Origin: Klebsormidium nitens
Lineage: Eukaryota; Plantae; Klebsormidiophyceae
Assembly: GCA_000708835.1 (NCBI GenBank)
Contig: DF236952.1
Span: 248,001-312,000, forward strand
Reading direction: 5' to 3'
Length of the DNA: 64,000 nt
How positions within the stretch are numbered: position 1 is the stretch's first letter; the number at the start of each line of letters is the position of its first letter. The position numbers and the translations under genes are program-made. Under the pieces are notes generated by a model that saw only the letters and a program-made list of their open reading frames with translations, was not told the origin of the DNA and searched no databases. Below, in pieces: positions 23,157 through 61,538 of the stretch.

Positions 23157-26100
23157 ATGGCAGGCCGCAAGCGCTCTTTTGCCAGCCCATTCTTTACCCT
23201 TCTTCCCACCTCTCTCACAGCTCTGTGTCTCTTCTGCTTTCCTTCTTCCTCCGCTCTCCCTCTGCCTCCCTCAACAGACTCTCGCGTCAGCCCAGCGATC
23301 AACCCTTCCGGCGCTTACGACCCCGACGCTTCCGGTGTGTCCACCGGTTACAACACCACAAAACCGGGAGGTGTCTGGACCGTGGTCACTACCAAGTCCG
23401 GCGTCTCGGGGGTTCACTGGGTGATCACACCGATTGTCAACACGCTGGTGATGATCGATCGGAGCGACAAAAACAACAGCTACCTGACGCTCCCCGACGG
23501 CCGCCCCTCGGTCGCGTGCGCGCACGATTTGGCGAACCCCGCGGCCGCGCCGCGCGCGCTGGACGTCATCTACAACGCGTTCTGCTCCGGGGGGCTGTTT
23601 TGGCCCAACGGGACACTGGTGGTGCAGGGGGGGTACCAGGAAACCAGCGGGTCCGACATCGGCTACAACGCGGTGCGCAATCTGGATCCCTGCCCTGCGA
23701 ATGGCACGTGCGACTTTTATGAGTACAAAGGTGAGGGCGCCGTGAGGAGAGGCTTTGCTCCTTCGTTCAGAGGAAGGGAAGTTGTGAGTATTGGAGATCT
23801 TCATGGCTGTGAGCTGTTCTTGACGCTTTGAAAGCGTTCTGAATCTACCGGGTGTGATGGATCAGTCCTACTGATGCAAGCTGCCTAGAAGGACGGATGA
23901 ACTCATCATCCGAAGACGTACCCTGATCTTTTCGACAAGCAAACAGAAGCAAGGAAGCCGAGGGAATAATCTGAGGGTGGCCTCAATTGCTGGCGCCGCA
24001 CAAAGAAAGTGATGGATCTTCCAGATTCTGCACGCATCTCCGAACATTCTTCTGAAAGGAATCTCAGAAGAGGAACTCGTGCTTTCTGGTGACTGATACA
24101 AGAGAAGTTGGAAAGTTGGGTCCAAAAAACGGGTTGAATGTATCCCTGAATGATGTTTCAATGGTACCCCGAAACATCATTCAGGGTACCATTGAAACCT
24201 GGTACCCTTTCATCATTCCTGTTATCTGCTCGCCAAGGCTTTTCAGAGCGCATCAATGATAGCATCGAGAAAACGTCTCTGTTTCACAGTCATGTAAAAC
24301 AGGCTTGTTCCGCTTTTGGACATGGCTAAATGCTGCCGACTTGAGGTGAGCATCGGAGTTCATTTGATGAACGTCAAGTCATCCACGGAGGCGGGACGGA
24401 GCATCCGGTTGAGGGATTTCGTGTAAGAATTGGATCTGCACCTTCTTCCGCTGCCCAAAATAAATCCCTATGTACGAGGACGCAGTGCTTCCTAAACCCG
24501 TGCGCGTGCCGTCGCTGAAATAAACCCCAGCTTCCAAAACTCTGGACCAATAGCTATCTTTCGCTCACGTCTTTGTGGCTCATCTTGTGCCAGGTGTCAC
24601 ACTCCTGGCGAAGCGCTGGTACCCGACCGCCCACATAATGCCGGAAGGTGACCGGTTGATCCTGATCGGGGGATCCACTCAGGGCTTCATTTTCCTCATC
24701 GATGATGAGGAATCCAACTCGGCGACGTACGAGTTCCATCCTCGGACCAAACCGGCGGATATGAAGGTACGTGTCTCTGCTCGAGTGTACCTCTCACGGC
24801 TTACACTTTCGATACGGCGGTAACAAGTCCGGATCTGGAAAGAAATGGATTCTGTGACTCAAGAACAATTGGTGCAGCAGCAATCGAACCAGAAGCTAGG
24901 TGAATTACATTTGTTGAACGGTGGTGACAAGTCCGAGTTTGGAGAAATAGGAACAAGTCTGTGACTCAAGATCAGGGCAACGTTCGAACCAGAAGCGGGT
25001 GTTCATCTGGTGTTGCGGCGGTTGGATATGATCTGGTCTTCAACGTTCAACAAAATTCTTTCAATAAGTTTATTGGTGTTTCAATTTTCTTCAATCGAAG
25101 GACAGCTGTCTTCACCGAAGGGGTTATTCAAGAATGGATGCGAATGCCTTTTTTGCATTTGAAAACCCTTATTCCGCTCATTCCCGTTTACGAATTTTGT
25201 AGAATTTTGCGTTTCAAGTGTCTGCCCTGACCTCCTCTGGAAACAGCGAGACAAGATTTCTTAATTTCCGTCTGACACGTGTCCTCGTCTGCAACAGCTC
25301 CGCCCCATGCCGCTGCTGACGCGCGCGTCCCCGGCCGTGCTGTACCCGTTCCTGCATTTAATGCCCAACGGCTACTTCTTCGTGATGGCCAACACCCAGG
25401 CGGTGCTCTTCAATTTTGACACGGGGGACGAGATCCTTCTACCGGATATCCCGGGCAAGATCTGCCGGTCTTACCCCTGGGCCGGTGGGGCTTTTCGTCA
25501 GCTCGGTTGATTGCTTTAGTTTCCTGAGACCAGTTGTTTTCGTCATAGAGAATATTGTCGCTAACCAGGCTGATCAGCGGACCTAAGTGTCATATTGTTG
25601 GACAATCAAACGGGCCTTTTTAGGACTTTTTACTGCCCAATTCCACTTTCTAACCAGCTTACAATCATCCATGTGTAGGGGCAAAAAACTTCTGGCGTTA
25701 GAGGACGACCCAATCAATCGTGTGGTCAGAATGTTTTCTTGTCGGGGTTCTCATCCTCTTCGGAAACCAGCCGATAACAAAGATTTCGGGCCAAGATCTG
25801 AGCACCTTTGTGTTCCACTTTCTTCACTTGCCTCCAAGAACCTGATTCTTGAGTCGGGAAGATAACTGAGAGTAACCCCCTATCAACGCATTTAGCTGCG
25901 CTAAACATTCGATGTCGCAGACACTGAATCTCAACCCACATCGTCTCTCTCTCGGGTGGCGATACCGGGAGTTTTTGCCCACCTATTCCTCGCCCGCGCA
26001 GGTTCCTCGGTGCTCCTTCCTTTGTCCTCCGCCAATAACTACACGCACGAGATCCTGGTCTGCGGTGGCTCTCCTTTTGACAATGACATGTCACGGGACA

Positions 26101-37500: not shown

Positions 37501-38030
37501 TTTAAAGTAGCCTCTCGAACGGAAAATTTACTCCACTTACAAAGCTACTCACAAGTCCCTTTTGATAACCTCAAGGACGAATACTGGTTTCAAGAGGCTG
37601 TTGGCTTGTCGTCATTTGCGTCCACCAAATCCATAAAACTCCACGCATTGTCTACATAACGCTCTTGATCGGTGGAGTGCCGCTGTGAAGTGTGCTCACC
37701 ATTATGCTTGGATGGCCCAGCAACGATGTTGTGTCTCGGTGGCGGCCTTCTCTGGTGTGTGAGGAGGCTAGAAAACCGTGGCCAAAAAATCGCCCATCGC
37801 ACACACGCAAAGCAAGTTATCTTGTCAAGCGGCCAAGGCCAGACGCGGTTCTGTGAAGGGGGCGTGAGGTTCTGCTTGGCGCAGAGTGCAATTCTCAGGT
37901 CGCGGCCTACTCTTATGAAGACAGAAGCCGCTTGCTCCTTCCTGGAAGGCTTTGCAGGAGATCATCAAAGTCACTCTCATCCAAAGATGCCCAGCTTCTG
38001 ATCACCGCAATTCTACAAGAGCCCACAAGC

Positions 38031-41000
38031 ATGGCGCTCCGCGATCCCCAATCTCCGTCTCCCTCCCTCAAGACAGCTCTCCTTCTCCTGATCGCTTCTT
38101 TCTTCCCTTTCTCTTCCCTCGCCATCTCTCCGATTCCTCCAAGCACCGACACCCTCGTTTCCCCGTCCATCAATCCAGCCGGCGCATACGATCCCGACCG
38201 CTCGGGGGTTTCCACTGACTACTCCTGCAAGAATCCGAACGGAACCTGGTCCCTTGTCACCATCAGTTCCGGGGTCAGCGGAATCCACTGGGCGATTAAC
38301 CCGGTCGTTAACACGCTGGTATTGATCGACCGATCTGACCGTGACGACAGCTACGTCAAAGACCGGAACGGCAACCAGGCGTCCGCGTCAATGCTGGATC
38401 TTGCTAACGTCACCGCGGGCCCACGTGGGCTGGACATCATAGACAACGCGTTCTGCTCCGCGGGGCAGTTCTGGCCCAACGGAACGCTGGTCAACACCGG
38501 CGGATTCAACACGGCGGACGGAAACGCCGCCGCGTTTTCCGGGGTGCGGTTCCTGGACCCGTGCCCAGGGAACGGAGACTGCGACTTCTACAACTATCCG
38601 GGTGAGGAGTTTAGGACGGTTTCAGAATGATTGACGTGTGTTGCAGGAGTGGTATCGAGTCTGTGCGCTTATGAGCATGAATCGAAGAGGTGCGTCCTAG
38701 AATCTAAATTATGTTCGTAGAGCTCTTGCCATTTGTCGTGCAAGATGATCGCTGGCCGTTGCTAGTTCAAGCGCTTTCCTGAGGTGAGTTCCTTGAATGC
38801 GTTGCGAAGCACGTGACAGTTCTCAACAAAGTAATGTGAACTTGATGATAAGTCACTTTCCGTTCGTTTGTTTGTTCCTCAGTACTCTGGAACCTACCGC
38901 CACAATTCTTGCAGTTTGAGAGCTCTTGGCGACTCTGCCGAGCTATTCAAGCGTCGTGTCATTCTGGCTGGTGAAATCAGAACCTGTTTTGAAGCTGAGC
39001 GCATTGAGATCTTGCTCGACGCCAATGCGCTCGAGGCCATTGGGCGCTTGGCACGTGCTTTCCAGAATCGCCCAGATTCCATAGGCATTTGCTTCGAGCG
39101 AGAAAGCCTCGTTCTCGCTTCACAGCTTCTTTTCAGACGGAGGTTTTCCCGCGTGTAAGGGTTTCATACTTCGCTGGAGCTTCTCTCAATCCTTTCCTCC
39201 ATGCGGGCTCATGCCTGAAAAATCCAGATGCGCTCGTCACTTTCCTGCTGCTCCTCATCAACGCTTTTGCCTTTGGAAACACCTTTGGATCTCACGCAGC
39301 CCGCGTCAAAGACTCCCAGATATGGTACGATCTTCTCTTGCTTCGTCCTTATCTGTCTCTTTCGTGATTCTTGGCTGGTGTTCTGCCAGGTGTCACTCTG
39401 CTGGCCAAGCGCTGGTACCCGTCCGCGCACTTGATGCCGGACGGCGTCCGAATCGTCGTCATCGGCGGCGCTCCCGTGGGCGATCTCGTCCTTATGCAGT
39501 TCACTAATCAGGCAAGTATGGAACGAAGTTTTGATGTCTTGTACTGATCTGCGGCTCTGTGAACTTTTTTATGTGTAAAAGGGTGCAGAAATTTGCTGAC
39601 GGTATGAAATGTCAGCCCACAGTCTGAATTCCAAAGACTTTATGACGCGTGAGAGGATGAATGTTTCTTGGATCAGCATGAAACGGATTCCGACTCACGC
39701 AAAAACAGGGACAACTGGAATTCTATCCAATTCTACCTTGACGATCCACCAGTCCACCAGGTTCTTCCCGCAGAGCCCTGTTCTCAACCCTTTTCCAGCG
39801 CGGTCGCTTGACGGAGTGACCCGAGTCACTCAGGTTTGCCTCGTCGCATTTTCTTTTCAAATACAGCCACGGTTTTTCTAATTTCTAGCGATTCCCCTTC
39901 TCCAACTTGCAGTCCTCCCCGACGTACGAAATCGTTCCGCGGACGGCCCCCGCGGACGCGCAGCTGCGGACGCTCCCCGTCCTGGTGCGCGCGTACCCCG
40001 CGCCGCTGTACCCGTTCCTGCATCTACTGCCCAACGGCTACTTTTTCGTGATGGCAAACTATTACGCCGTGCTTTACAACTTCGACACCGGGGACGAGAT
40101 CCTGCTGCCGGACATGCCGGGAAACATCACGCGGTCGTATCCGTACACTGGTGCGGACGCCTCCCGGGATCTTGCACCATTCCGTTTTGCAACGCTCGCC
40201 ATCCGTTCAAAGTCTGAAAGGAACTGTTGCAGAAACCTTCTGAAACGTTTTCACTTTGAACAGATGTGAAAAGTGTCATACCAAGTGAAAAATTTCGATT
40301 CCAAGGATTCGATGTTGTCTTGGAGAATCCAGGAGCTCGAGGGTCAGGACCGAGTTTGAAAGTCAGGAGGCCAACTGGAGGTTTTAGTTGGCCTGTTTTG
40401 TTACGCAACTTTTCCGTCTGCGAGGTGATCAGGAAGGAGGGTCATGTCGGACGCAAATTTGGACTCCATCCCGATCTGAGTCATTTCGAAGCGCGTCTTC
40501 TATTCTGTGCTCGTAGCTTTCTTTGTTCCCTCGGTCGAAAGTCAGGCAGATCGATATCGGAACTTGGGGTCAACTTGGGCCTACCTTGACGTTTTCGTCG
40601 GGTCTTTTCTTTACCTTCGCCTTGACACCCGCTCGCTCTGGCCCACCAACAACTTTCTTGGTGGGCGTTCGAGCTACTATTTCCAGCTAACCCTCAGATT
40701 CTAACCTAGCCCCTAACCGTTGTCTGCAGGCACGTCGGTACTTCTACCTATGTCGCTCGAGAACAATTACACCGCCGAGATCCTGGTTTGCGGGGGCAGC
40801 AAGTTTAACCCTAACCCGGGCCGCGACCTGCCCGCGGACGACTCCTGCGGACGTATCCGTCCGCTGGACCCTAACCCAAAGTGGGTTATGGAAACCATGC
40901 CGGACGCACGGATCGTCCCGGACGGGATCATCACGGCAAACGGACAGGTAAGTGACGCGCGCGTTTTTAAGCTACTTGGAGATGTGGAGAGTCAAAAATC

Positions 41001-56639: not shown

Positions 56640-59600
56640 CTAGTGCTGGTACAGGTAGTCCCAGTACTGAGTGGGTCCAAGAATTGCCATACGGTATGGG
56701 TGTCCGCCCAGGTTGAACGCGCGGAGAAGTTCGAAGTTGTCCGCGTGATGCTCGTTCACGACGCCCGCCTCAGGGTTGGAAATGTAGATCTGTACCAAAA
56801 TGAGACGATGTTTTCAGCGCTGCTCGTTGATTCAAAGGACGCTGTGCCATCAGGAGGGAGACCCTAGATACAGTCGACCAGAAGATTGTAGTTCCCGAAA
56901 GCTGAACGGATGGGGGACCATGGCTGAAGCTTGCTTAGACAGAGCGAGGAAAGGGGAACGCGGTTGAGTTAATTGCCCTCTAGAATATAACAATGGAGAC
57001 AAAAGAGAAGAAGCGTCGAACGAAGAGAAACACATGAAGGAAGCTTTCTCATGTTGGGCGAAGGAGACACACCAAACGGAGGATGCGCCGAGATGGGTCT
57101 TGCTAACGGATGAAAGAAAACGTGCCACTCGATATTTGAAGGGAGGAAACTGTTGAACGGGTCTTTACTGTCGGTTAGAAATGCCCCCCTAAATATACAG
57201 AAGATGAGAACGTTTTGGCCCTGTTGCTTACCCTTCCGAGACCAGCCTGGATGACGGGCAAAAGAAGAAGCTTTCTTATGCTGTTATGCCTGGCGAAAGA
57301 GAAACCCCACTGTGCAGGATGCGCCGAGATGGGTCTTGCTACTTGCTAGAAACGTCCCCCCTCACATACGAATGGGTGAGAACGTTCTGGCATGTTGCTT
57401 ACCCTTCCGAGACCAGCCTGAATGACGGGCAGAACAGCGGAGTGATCGTCGCCCTCGGCCTCCGGCGCGGGCGCGCCCAAAACCCCGGTCGCGCGGCGGA
57501 GGACGGCGCCCGTCTGGGGGTTGAGCAGGGTCAGAGTGCCGTCGTTGCCCGCGGAAAGAACGGCGAAGAACGCGCCGGCCGGATCGTAGGCTGCAGTGGA
57601 GAGAATGGAGAGAACCGAAGAGCTTCAGAGTCTGCTTGATTCAACTTTCTCAAACGAGATCAACCGGCCGGCACTTTGTAAAAACGGTCAAGGAAGCACA
57701 AGTAGGAACGGCATTGTGGGTCTGCCATTGAGCCTACGGTGTTCGATCTCGCAACGGACCTCGGCTTTGCCTCCGACTGGTTCAAGTGTGCAGGGTTACA
57801 AGTTCGTTAGACCACCAGCCATCTGACAATCTCGACTTCAGGCTAAGACACGTGGACCATTCGGAACGGAAGGGAGATTCGCGATTGCGTCTTGGCTCCA
57901 AACCAGAGTGTAGGTAACGGAGGCGAGTCCAAGTTGCCACAGTCAAATGGACAAAGCAGTTCCTTCCTGACGTTGATGCCCTTTCTCAAAGGACGAACCA
58001 TACACTTCAGATCCGGCGTAAGGGAACCCACCAGTCGAGATGATGTCACCATCGGCGGTCGCATTGATAACTAGAGTGGCGGTCAGCTTCACGGGGTCGA
58101 ACGCGTGGATGCCCACGGAGTCCTCGCCGGCGCTTGTCGAGCCGAAGAACGTCTTGTACATTGCGTGTCCGTACAGGCTGCCAGTGTACACGCCCGCAAC
58201 AGGGTACGGGATCTTGGTGTGGGTCAGGTTAGCGGGAGCTGCAGGAACACAGGAAGAGTTTGAGAAGGGTTAGTGCCTAACCATCTAGAAGGGACTGTGA
58301 TACTCTGGGTTTTGTGAGATTTGAGTCTTGGAAGCCACCCCGGTTTGTTATCTGAAGCGTTTCGGTGCAAATTGAGAGATTTCGAAAAGCAGGAATATTA
58401 CAGATCAGGACGGGCAGATAAATGGCGACTTGAAAAAGCACTACTTCTACATACAACGAAGCTTTCCGAAAGCTCGATAGCTGCCAACTTCGATCAGACG
58501 TCACCCGAACAATCAGTAGTACTGCAAGGGCCTTCTGGTCGCCAAAGGCGTGACTTTGTCCCGACGCCGTGTCTGAGCAGATCTTCCACCGTTAGTTCCT
58601 TCCTTCGTTAAGACCGCAGAAACTCACCTGTGTAGGTCACGACCAGAATGCCGTCCCGGCAGCCGAAGAGTGCGTGGTAACCGTTGGTCGCACTCCCGTG
58701 GAGACCGGGGCATGCCGTGCTGGCGCCGTCATACGCGAGGGAACCGTTCTCGAAGTGGACCTGCACATCCGGCGGAATCCAATGCGAGTCAGATGACAGA
58801 AAGTTGGAGAGATGCCTGTGGAACGGACCACGTGGTTGCAAGCACTCTCCTTCACACGAAGAGATTTGGGAGTGTTGCGGCCTTTTTGAAAGGCTACGAG
58901 AAAAGCCTCATGTAGGGCGTCTTCCTGTTTGCTTCCGGGTCGATCATGCAACAGCTTTTTCAACCGACCATTCTAAACATCCGGAGACCGCAGGACTCTT
59001 TTTCTCCGGTTTTAAAGCCTATCGCCACTCGTACAGTAAGCCTGTTGCTGCAGGATCATACCAACCGCAGAACGGTGGCTCTCTCTCCGGCAGCCGTCTT
59101 TAAAACCGCAGTGCTAAGGTTACAAGACAAAGCCTACTGTTCCGGGGTTCAGAGTTCATTTTTTTCAAGAGCTTCAATCAACTCGCCAGCACTCCGCTAG
59201 GCAGAGACGAACTCCCGGCGGCAACGGCGGTCTGGCTCGCGTGCGTAACGATATTGATCTCCAGCAGATTTCTTGAGGAAAGCAGTGCTAAGGTTACAAG
59301 AAAAGGTCTACTGTATCCAGGGTTTGAGGTTGCTTTTGAAGGGCTTCAGAAAACTTGCCAGCACTCCGCTGGGCAGAGACGATCTCCCGGCAGCAACGGC
59401 GGTCTGGTTCGCGTGCGTAACGACATAAAAGTTGCCCCTCAGGGGCACCGCCGCACCGTGGTGCGGATCCACCTTGAAGGATCTGGTCGTATAGGTCGCG
59501 TTCTCGAAGAGCACCTCGTTGAGCAGGGTCACTTCGCCGGCTGCAAGCACGGGGGGTGGAAACCGGTTAGCGCAAAACATTCATAAGAAGGCTCTTTTCA

Positions 59601-61538
59601 CCGAGTGCAAGCATGTGGGGGCAATCGGTTAGCTAAGTGCTCACTTTGCCGGTTGCCAGTACTGGGAATTCGAAAGCGGTTTGGCAGTGCGCGTGCTTTG
59701 ATGTTCGACAGCAGACTTGGGTGTACATTCATCGTGGAGCCCAGGATAAGCATGAAGCACTTTGACCTGCCGGCCAGTCACTGATTCCATCCAACATCTC
59801 CAGAGACTTGAATCTGGTTCAATACGCCTAAGTTTACGGGACGACTTAGGCGTATTGAGGTGGAGAGATAGATTGAAAGAAGAGGGCCCCTTGACCTAGA
59901 TAGACCGAGACACTTGCTTTGGGAGGGGCATCAAGAGCCGGAAACAGGAGTGCAATTCCGTGTTTTGGATCAAGATAGAGTTTGAAAAGGCCAACAGTTG
60001 ATAGATGAGCATTTCTGAAAAAGGGCAATGAGAATCAGAATTGACGGAACTTTCAAAAAGACACTAAAACCCGAAGTTGCTTACATTGGTCATGGAAGAT
60101 GGCGGCATTCCGCGCCCGCTGGACAAAGTGAGTCGGGGCTGCCCCGGGGATAGTGCGGGTCGTGAGCCCTGGAGCCGCATCTTGTTCCAAGTGCCAGTGG
60201 TCCTCATGGAACTCTGCCAGAAGCATTGGGGTGAGTTAGTCAAGAAGGCCCCAAAAGGCATTTCAGCGGCGATTCCCAACCAGCTTTGAGGGCTTTCGTG
60301 AGCTTTCATTCGTTTCCGTAACTCTCTTGTGGGCTTTCTATTTGTTTCCGTCAGACAGGATTACTGTGTTCGCCCCGAAAACTCCTGAGCTGAAGCACAG
60401 AACACTCTCTGAGAAGAGCGGCGGCCGAGAGACGTACACTACCCATCGCCTGTTTGGACCCAGTACGAAGGATCCAGAAAGGGATTCAGAGGTTCTCTCA
60501 AGAAAGAACGGTGTACTTGGCTGGTGACACAAAGTTTCGATTTGTGAAAGTGAAAGGAACTTGGGAGTACTCATTGGCAGCAGCTTGGGGCGAGATCCCT
60601 TGGCAGAACGGTATGGTGGCATCATTCAGTGCAAAGGGGACTGGACCGATGCTGACGTCAGGGGCAATCACCAATATACATCTGGCTGTCATATACGGTC
60701 GTCACGTTGGCCGTGCGCTGGAGGATGTAAGCATAACGGCCCATGGAGCTGGCATAGACCGACACAGAGGAGTTGGCCAGCTGGAGGGTCTCGTTAATGG
60801 CGCCGGTCCTCAGGTCAATGACCGTAACCTGTGACAAAGGCAATGTAGGGCAGGCTTAAGTTGGCTGCAAAGGTACTGACTAGCATTCCGAGCAGCAAGA
60901 ATGGAAAAGCTCAGTTGCTGAAAGTGGTTGCGCGAGCCGCAGCACGAAGCCCCAGAGCAGTAACAATCCTTCAAAGGGATTCGGTTCAAGAAACTTTGCT
61001 TCCCATTGCCAGGACTTCAGTGAAGCTCTTCTTTTCGACTGTCCATTTTCCACAGAGTGCCTAGCTACAGTGCCTTTTACTGAACTTTCACATTACAAAA
61101 GCAATCACAACTCTGCTCATAAACGGACATATATTATCTACCTCATCACCTTTCTCAACCCTCAATTGCAAGCAATGCCAGTGTGGCCTTCTCAGTCTCA
61201 GTCATTGCTGAAGAATCCTGAACGCCTTCCTTCACGGTCCATTGTTTGACCTTGCGTACCTTAGGAAGCACTTTCTGTGGGCTCATCACACTTTGTACAA
61301 CTCCAAATTCGGCCCAAACAAATCAGGGAGTCTTGCCAGCGGACGTCCAAATACTCACCTGGCCGTTGGTTACCCCGTCCGTCACCAGCAGGTAGCCCTG
61401 GACGGTCGAACGAACTGGCACAAAGGAGGTGATGGTACCATTGGGAGCTGCCTGAAGAAGGCCGCGCCCCGCAGCGTGGGCGGTTTGCAGACCGCACAGC
61501 GCCGAGAGGAGAACGAGCGCAAGGAGCAGCTTGGCCAT
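56640..61538 (-). CDS. Secreted His-rich protein resembling the bacterial periplasmic zinc metallochaperone AztD (beta-propeller) (8 exons, ~441 aa)
   Basis: Exons: 61538-61359, 60828-60672, 60213-60085, 59540-59359, 58760-58628, 58238-58032, 57590-57403, 56789-56640. Phases are consistent and intron 4 is GC-AG (CTG|GCAAGT). Signal peptide MAKLLLALVLLSALCGLQTAHA. Ordered motifs: GRYAYILQR, IEFHEDHWH, GAAPTHF, PHHGAAVP, LPSGV, CPGLHGSA, FGCRDG, NDGTLTLLN, YISNP, LGGHP, C-terminal His. The gene model is strong; the AztD assignment is motif recall only. Confidence 0.8.
57070..57430 (-). repeat. 171-bp tandem duplication spanning the AztD-like exon 7 donor
   Basis: GTTGCTTACCCTTCCGAGACCAGCCTG(G/A)ATGACGGGCA occurs at ~57223 and ~57394; GGATGCGCCGAGATGGGTCTTGCTA occurs at ~57080 and ~57317. 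Confidence 0.88.
59109..59421 (-). repeat. 172-bp tandem duplication spanning the AztD-like exon 4 GC donor
   Basis: GCAGTGCTAAGGTTACAAG occurs at 59109 and 59282. The ~65-nt exon tail is copied with ~4 mismatches. Donors are GCAAGT (59358, true) and GCGAGT (59186, copy). Confidence 0.9.

Follow-up and report, generated by a model that had tools for sequence, protein, structure and literature searches.

An intron-containing gene homologous to the bacterial zinc metallochaperone AztD in the streptophyte alga Klebsormidium nitens

Introduction

How does a relative of a periplasmic zinc carrier come to be encoded in the nuclear genome of an alga, and what could it do there? The question is raised by a minus-strand gene of Klebsormidium nitens at positions 56640–61538 of a 64,000-nucleotide stretch of DNA (assembly GCA_000708835.1, contig DF236952.1, positions 248,001 to 312,000), which is referred to here as the window and from whose first letter all positions are counted. 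An initial annotation, made from the letters alone, had read this gene as an intron-containing, secreted homologue of the bacterial zinc metallochaperone AztD. Direct hand-over of zinc from one protein to another has been demonstrated for few proteins; AztD is among them, and it has so far been treated as purely bacterial. The structural study of the family discusses it as a bacterial one and brings in eukaryotes only for the similarity of the WD40 fold (PMC6689063); as the annotation had supposed, we found no eukaryotic AztD described in papers that mention the protein.

The reading that we favour, and consider fairly probable, is that the gene encodes a nuclear algal member of the AztD family, a soluble β-propeller that enters the secretory pathway and binds Zn(II) at two sites as bacterial AztD does. 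Judged from its sequence, it would extend a known family to a domain of life new to that family, with adaptations to the eukaryotic secretory route. An expressed, conserved and, as predicted, secretory-pathway copy in a streptophyte alga would mean that the module survives without a periplasm and, apparently, without a partner transporter of the ATP-binding cassette (ABC) type. Such a copy would also be a definite candidate for the handling of zinc outside the cell in the algal lineage near the land plants. It would further give a dated case of a gene for bacterial metal acquisition that has been fitted to a eukaryotic host, with seven introns, a signal for the endoplasmic reticulum (ER) and glycan sites.

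A transcribed gene for an AztD-like propeller

The gene is a spliced and transcribed nuclear gene of a streptophyte alga. In each of four public runs (X10, X11, X14 and X15), which come from four studies, all 8 exons and all 7 joints are present in one contig, from which the seven introns of 389–613 bases have been removed, and the joined coding sequence (CDS) of 1326 nt gives a product of exactly 441 amino acids. The eight-exon structure, the junctions and the length of about 441 residues that had been predicted for this locus are thus all recovered in transcripts. The splice ends are GT–AG in six introns, intron 4 (58761–59358) being the sole GC–AG intron, and the 3′ untranslated region (UTR) extends to about 56290. 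The library type of the four runs is not on record; messenger RNA is the simple reading of them, since they contain about one-quarter of the words of the stretch, which matches the exon share.

Relatedness to AztD can be seen in single exons. Exons 3, 4 and 5 match the NCBIfam model NF038015 ("zinc metallochaperone AztD") in colinear order, at profile positions 55–99, 94–140 and 159–193 and with 20, 14 and 30 bits, respectively (E-values of 1.7e-4 for exon 3 and 2.9e-7 for exon 5). The best matches of exon 5 in the PDB are chains of AztD crystal structures, 6cmk and 6ck1, the string CPGLHGSA being common to the exon and 6cmk, and a tblastn search with the same exon against plasmids leads to genes that carry the annotation metallochaperone AztD; in the PDB search, no AztD chain was reached with exon 3 alone. 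With the spliced protein, BLASTP aligns 395 residues to Skermanella AztD at 26% identity (84 bits), phmmer gives 100–143 bits against individual bacterial members, and the score against a local hidden Markov model built from 123 bacterial AztDs is 153 bits, with positions 35–399 of 404 aligned to residues 48–431 of the protein. Identity to bacterial AztDs lies between 26 and 31%. Taken together, these sequence comparisons establish homology across the whole AztD propeller, and the family assignment of the annotation holds. Furthermore, an eight-bladed β-propeller fold is predicted, because the protein aligns in full length with relatives whose own matches to 6cmk and 6ck1 have E-values of 1e-93 to 1e-107 (Skermanella AztD matches the crystallized chains with 361 and 316 bits). 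Pfam holds no model for the AztD family and gave no match on the exons; it is likewise blank for all listed homologues save for fusion rows with PF01297 or PF13360.

The gene is also found in other algae. An exhaustive HMMER search with exon 6 against 1.84 billion representative proteins retrieved only three related algal open reading frame (ORF) fragments (P0001–P0003); the other hits in that set were two unrelated repeat proteins, with no other eukaryotic relative among them. Two of the three fragments lead to genomic contigs, L003 from a Logan assembly and L004, a 42-kb contig of a JGI metagenome, and both carry the same gene in 8 exons and agree in the places and phases of the introns, except that two L004 boundaries are offset by two codons. 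Since intron positions and phases are common to L003 and L004, the gene and its introns are older than the split of these algae. The encoded proteins are 87.5% (L003) and 50.8% (L004) identical to the window protein. At the DNA level, the match to L003 is limited to the exons and the 3′ UTR, the ratio of nonsynonymous to synonymous changes (dN/dS) is 0.13, and the gene is, on this comparison of sequences, under purifying selection. Two profile searches that combined bacterial rows with algal exon rows gave bacterial proteins only, which is weak evidence on eukaryotes as MAFFT had spread the short exon rows across the repeated blades and left both profiles imperfect. Patterns specific to algal exon 5 retrieved nothing from genome contigs or metagenome contigs.

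The bacterial affinity of the protein, and nothing else, could suggest a bacterial contaminant of the assembly or the dead relic of a transfer. Against it stand seven spliceosomal introns that are removed in transcripts and recur, in position and phase, in two other algal contigs, a GC content of 0.77 at third codon positions of the CDS versus 0.50 in the introns, an intact reading frame under purifying selection, and kinase-domain and glyoxal-oxidase-like ORFs in the same window. We regard this explanation as refuted by these observations and its residual probability as negligible.

Conservation of the metal sites

In AztD of Paracoccus denitrificans, site 1 is formed by His124, His167 and His218, site 2 by His99, His102, Asp104 and the C-terminal His408, and a disulfide joins Cys214 and Cys231; in the bacterial protein, site 2 is the transfer site (PMC6689063). 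We mapped these columns onto the algal protein through Skermanella AztD and a profile alignment of 123 bacterial sequences. Site 1 corresponds to His141 (60130–60128), His183 (59460–59458) and His237 (58700–58698), within the motifs PTHF, PHHG (H182/183) and CPGLHG, and none of these residues varies among the three algal sequences; in the bacterial set, His fills the columns in 122–123 of 123 sequences. The disulfide pair corresponds to Cys233 (58712–58710, in CPGLHG) and Cys250 (58661–58659, in FGCRDG), has the 17-residue spacing of AztD and is invariant in all sequences compared. The only other cysteine is Cys15, and the mature protein has just Cys233 and Cys250.

Site 2 corresponds to His115 and His118 in the hairpin motif HEDHWH (residues 115–120, H115-E-D-H118-W-H120; 60208–60191) and to the terminal His441 (56645–56643), which is equivalent to His408; His120 takes the place of Asp104 and Glu116 that of Gly100. 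All three algal sequences have His at the Asp104 position as well as the C-terminal His, and L004 has Glu in place of His115 while retaining Gly at the Gly100 position. In all three, each of the ten checked ligand and disulfide columns is ligand-capable. Some members from Myxococcota, Actinomycetota and Cellvibrio also have His at the Asp104 position, which can therefore be read as a natural variant of the site, and site 2 is probably still functional. The histidine motifs, the cysteine pair, the terminal histidine and the nine N-X-S/T sequons that the initial annotation had picked out are each found in the translated spliced CDS, and the site-1 triad, the disulfide pair and the C-terminal His align in AztD order. 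What was claimed of the metal ligands holds as stated for site 1 and the disulfide; at site 2, on the other hand, the algal protein has a variant in which His replaces Asp104.

Entry into the secretory pathway

By hydropathy, residues 1–23 are the sole hydrophobic segment of the protein. They contain a predicted signal peptide of amino acids 1–22 (61538–61473), which ends in A-H-A before A23, the cleavage site being judged by eye. The nine sequons (NGT33, NET72, NSS79, NVT101, NAT169, NQT200, NGS221, NLT264 and NAT319) are about three times as many as expected by chance (2.8 ± 1.5 in 5000 shuffles, P about 0.0004). Each of the three algal proteins has 9, versus 2.2–2.9 expected, and bacterial homologues have a mean of 0.7; in the 51%-identical orthologue L004, seven of the nine window sequons occupy the same alignment columns. 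No C-terminal retention or anchor signal is present in the spliced protein, its last residue being the conserved His. The N-terminal hydrophobic segment, the conserved excess of sequons and the lack of a retention or anchor signal thus speak for a soluble, N-glycosylated secretory-pathway protein. The role of a glycosylated extracellular metal scavenger, as first proposed for this gene, could be correct, and the conserved sequon excess fits with it.

Seven or more glycan sites could equally suggest a wall glycoprotein, and it is conceivable that the propeller no longer carries metal and serves instead as an enzyme, lectin or wall protein, its histidines being kept for structural reasons. β-Propellers serve many functions, and identity to bacterial AztDs is only 26–31%. 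Nevertheless, all ten ligand and disulfide columns have stayed ligand-capable in three algal sequences despite 49% divergence, the flexible terminal His has been kept although it has no structural role, and dN/dS is as low as 0.13. We therefore consider such a change of function improbable, and return to a propeller that carries metal.

Origin of the algal gene

A scan for the motif [AD]CP[GE]LHG[SQE]A in one genome per bacterial species gave 79 loci, among which those in metagenome-assembled genomes (MAGs) of Dehalococcoidia are most like the algal exon. The Dehalococcoidia proteins score 117–143 bits against the algal protein, and alphaproteobacterial AztDs about 100. In the main tree of 51 rows (IQ-TREE, LG+C20+F+G4 with posterior mean site frequencies), the algal clade (100/100) is sister to a Dehalococcoidia-type clade of Chloroflexota (100/95), the join being supported at 98/89. 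The pair falls within a divergent bacterial group (99/95), apart from the proteobacterial AztDs, including that of Skermanella, and from those of Actinomycetota. Quick trees agree with this placement; a first FastTree that held Skermanella-like rows only did not place the algal clade and was replaced by the wider trees. The bacterial rows were drawn by the motif and by a Dehalococcoidia-seeded profile, the root is arbitrary, and the algal stem branch is long, at about 1.1 changes per site.

The economical reading of this tree is a transfer from a bacterium to an alga. The annotation had proposed an old transfer followed by intron gain, which agrees with an algal clade nested in bacteria and with seven introns common to a 51%-identical orthologue. 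Its view of the bacterial side needs to be refined: the affinity to bacterial AztD stands, but the nearest relatives found are divergent AztD-like domains of the Dehalococcoidia type and not the characterized proteobacterial AztD. The donor may be described as Chloroflexota-like or unsampled, and no more closely than that. The length of the stem would also allow a great age, and the sampling of eukaryotes is indirect, both of which leave some room for vertical or plastid-ancestor inheritance followed by near-universal loss. That history seems very unlikely to us, given that the exon-6 search of representative proteins recovered three algal fragments and no other eukaryotic protein, and that the nearest relatives found are Chloroflexota, with no cyanobacterial sequence among the nearest matches. 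Horizontal transfer thus remains our preferred account.

Exon organization and neighbouring genes

The exon boundaries were taken from the spliced contigs and their translation, and all exons lie on the minus strand. Exon 1 (61359–61538) encodes residues 1–60, with the start codon at 61538–61536 and the sequon NGT33. Exon 2 (60672–60828; residues 61–112 and one further base) covers the first propeller blade region, corresponds to positions about 45–105 of the bacterial AztD profile and contributes NET72, NSS79 and NVT101. The site-2 hairpin and the first site-1 residue, His141, are both encoded by exon 3 (60085–60213; residues 113–155). Exon 4 (59359–59540; residues 156–216) carries the site-1 His183, NAT169 and NQT200 and ends at the GC donor, and exon 5 (58628–58760; residues 217–260) carries Cys233, the site-1 His237, Cys250 and NGS221. 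NLT264 and NAT319 are in exon 6 (58032–58238; residues 261–329), which is followed by exon 7 (57403–57590; residues 330–392) and by exon 8 (56640–56789; residues 393–441 and the stop codon) with the C-terminal His441.

Some of the introns have features of their own. The donor of intron 4 reads CTG/GCAAGT; the orthologous intron of L003 has GT (CAG/GTAGGT), and the intronic echo of this site in the window is also GC. At the start of intron 4, the exon-4/intron-4 boundary is repeated in tandem (59084–59254 versus 59258–59426, about 172 bases from the live one), and intron 7 (56790–57402) likewise begins with a tandem copy of the exon-7/intron-7 boundary (57222–57263 versus 57393–57434, 95% identity, 171 bases apart). 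In both introns, the copies, decayed and about 171–174 bases from the live boundary, retain a site resembling a donor, and the last codons of the exon can still be read in them. Run X10 yields additional short, low-depth contigs that lie wholly or partly within introns 7, 4 and 2 (56826–56988, 58845–59074 and 60228–60701), and run X15 one further contig in intron 2 (60257–60454); these probably stem from precursor RNA before splicing or from carried-over DNA.

In the window, Pfam matches only one kinase exon and, far upstream, two glyoxal-oxidase-like exons. The latter two, which are about 14 kb apart (23157–23831 and 37857–38627), resemble the N-terminus of glyoxal oxidase (PF07250; E-values of 9e-11 and 4e-9, respectively) and may belong to two paralogous genes whose products would be secreted proteins of the copper radical oxidase type. 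A second AztD-like copy was not found in the window by tblastn.

Proposed function

On the reading that we favour, the signal peptide would be cut after Ala22 and the N-glycosylated protein would be delivered outside the plasma membrane, to the cell wall or apoplast, or possibly to the vacuole. By analogy with bacterial AztD, Zn(II) would be bound in the pore at site 1 and, at site 2, on the flexible hairpin together with the C-terminus. More speculatively, as a periplasm is absent and no binding protein of the AztC type lies nearby, the flexible site 2 might hand zinc to a different acceptor, one that is not a substrate-binding protein (SBP), for instance a His-rich loop exposed on a ZIP-type importer; or else the protein might simply buffer or capture zinc near the cell surface. 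It would then work in the manner of a fungal zincophore, to which it is unrelated. The boldest form of this idea is that of a bacterial periplasmic metallochaperone rewired in the alga, in which a glycosylated wall propeller passes zinc from an all-His site 2 to a ZIP-like importer. We hold this to be a tentative and rather unlikely proposal; if true, it would mean protein-to-protein metal transfer outside a eukaryotic cell and a new class of acceptor.

Several points weigh against a zinc carrier of the AztD type. First of all, the curated cut-off of NF038015 is 400 bits, and calibration of the model gave 407 bits for Inquilinus, 371 for Skermanella, 147–159 for Dehalococcoidia and 131 for Thermus proteins; with its nearest bacterial relatives as a proxy (131–159 bits), the whole algal protein would score far below the cut-off, and it would thus be a divergent homologue and not an AztD equivalog. 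Second, site 2 is unlike that of characterized AztDs, not only in the change of Asp104 to His but also at Gly100, a 93%-conserved residue that is Glu in two algal sequences out of the three, and metal preference could differ with it. Third, tblastn with three SBP queries found no ZnuA/AztC-type gene in the window, and a partial Pfam scan of the longer ORFs from 41.6 kb to the window end gave no match and no transporter or zinc gene. Finally, knockout of aztD in Paracoccus has only a mild phenotype (PMC6689063). The missing aztABC partner had been noted in the initial annotation, and these searches agree with it; the SBP queries also found nothing in L004 and only a chance-level match in L003 (E = 0.09). 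Among bacterial AztDs, an SBP neighbour is present for only about half (PMC6689063), and Skermanella aztD is without one. The acceptor partner, if there is any, would be elsewhere or of another kind.

A rival reading keeps the protein and its fold but has it serve a divalent metal other than zinc (Cu, Ni, Co or Mn), or sees in it sequestration or detoxification of metal in the wall or vacuole in place of zinc acquisition. The algal site 2 is all-His (H-x-D-H-W-H and the terminal His) where AztD has His2-Asp-His, a zinc importer gene was not found beside the algal gene by the SBP queries or the partial Pfam scan, and some bacterial AztD clusters have no obvious zinc neighbourhood (PMC6689063). 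However, the site-1 triad is unaltered, and the exchange of Asp for His also occurs in bacteria, including Dehalococcoidia-type propellers that are fused to AztC/ZnuA-type zinc/manganese binding proteins. Another metal or a sequestering role is therefore a minority possibility, and binding of zinc at both sites is what we continue to favour.

Comparison with known systems

The closest characterized counterparts are the AztDs of Paracoccus denitrificans and Citrobacter koseri (PDB 6CK1 and 6CMK/6N01; PMC6689063). With them the algal protein has in common the colinear order of the whole propeller, the site-1 triad, the disulfide pair, a site-2 hairpin with two His, the C-terminal His and an N-terminal export signal. 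It differs from them in its sequence (about 26–31% identity, His for Asp104 and Glu for Gly100), in being eukaryotic, with seven introns, an ER-type signal and nine sequons, and in its setting, which has no periplasm, no aztABC operon and no AztC partner in the window.

In terms of the proposed mode of working, a parallel lies in fungi. The zincophores Pra1 of Candida albicans and Aspf2 of Aspergillus fumigatus are secreted, glycosylated proteins that capture zinc extracellularly and return it to a membrane importer, and they are encoded beside their ZIP partners (ZRT1 and ZrfC). They are not homologous to the algal protein and have another fold, and no ZIP neighbour is seen at the algal gene.

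Among bacteria, ZinT and the ZinT–ZnuA fusion AdcA represent a further case of an accessory extracytoplasmic zinc protein that feeds a cluster A-I binding protein (PMC6689063). ZinT resembles the Dehalococcoidia proteins in also being found fused to a binding protein, whereas its lipocalin-like fold is unrelated and it is bacterial only. AztD-like genes can also be encoded next to a binding protein: the plasmid pTHEOS01 of Thermus oshimai has, directly after a gene for a metal ABC substrate-binding protein, a tandem pair of AztD-like genes with the annotation hypothetical (L002, 4434–5564 and 5626–6828). In the second paralogue, the His residues of site 2 and the first His of site 1 are lost, with E-G-G-F-R-R and E in their places.

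The nearest relatives found, the AztD-like domains of Dehalococcoidia, have with the algal protein an aromatic residue between the two site-2 His in common and give similarly low NCBIfam AztD scores (147–159 bits). They are, however, bacterial and intron-free, and most have Asp at the Asp104 position. They occur either as stand-alone proteins (L018, L019, P0126–P0159) or within a ZnuA/AztC-type binding protein (L015, L016, P0162 and others); many of these propellers are thus fused to a zinc/manganese binding protein, and no such protein was found in the algal window. In the fused form, seen in MAGs (L015, 1430–3721; also L005–L016, L022, L024 and P0162–P0191), the propeller is inserted between the two lobes of the SBP. 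In L015 it occupies residues 184–562, with the SBP N-lobe at about 60–171 and the C-lobe matched by Pfam ZnuA at 575–761, and NCBIfam AztC matches with 263 bits in two stretches, the insertion falling around profile position 86–91. The insertion point appears to be near the flexible AztC loop, which has been modelled as docking into the AztD pore (PMC6689063). The protein is a Rosetta-stone fusion that is not mentioned in that study. The affinity of the algal gene to Dehalococcoidia raises the question of which acceptor the alga employs, and the propeller-in-SBP arrangement of these relatives independently supports a functional link between AztD and its substrate-binding protein.

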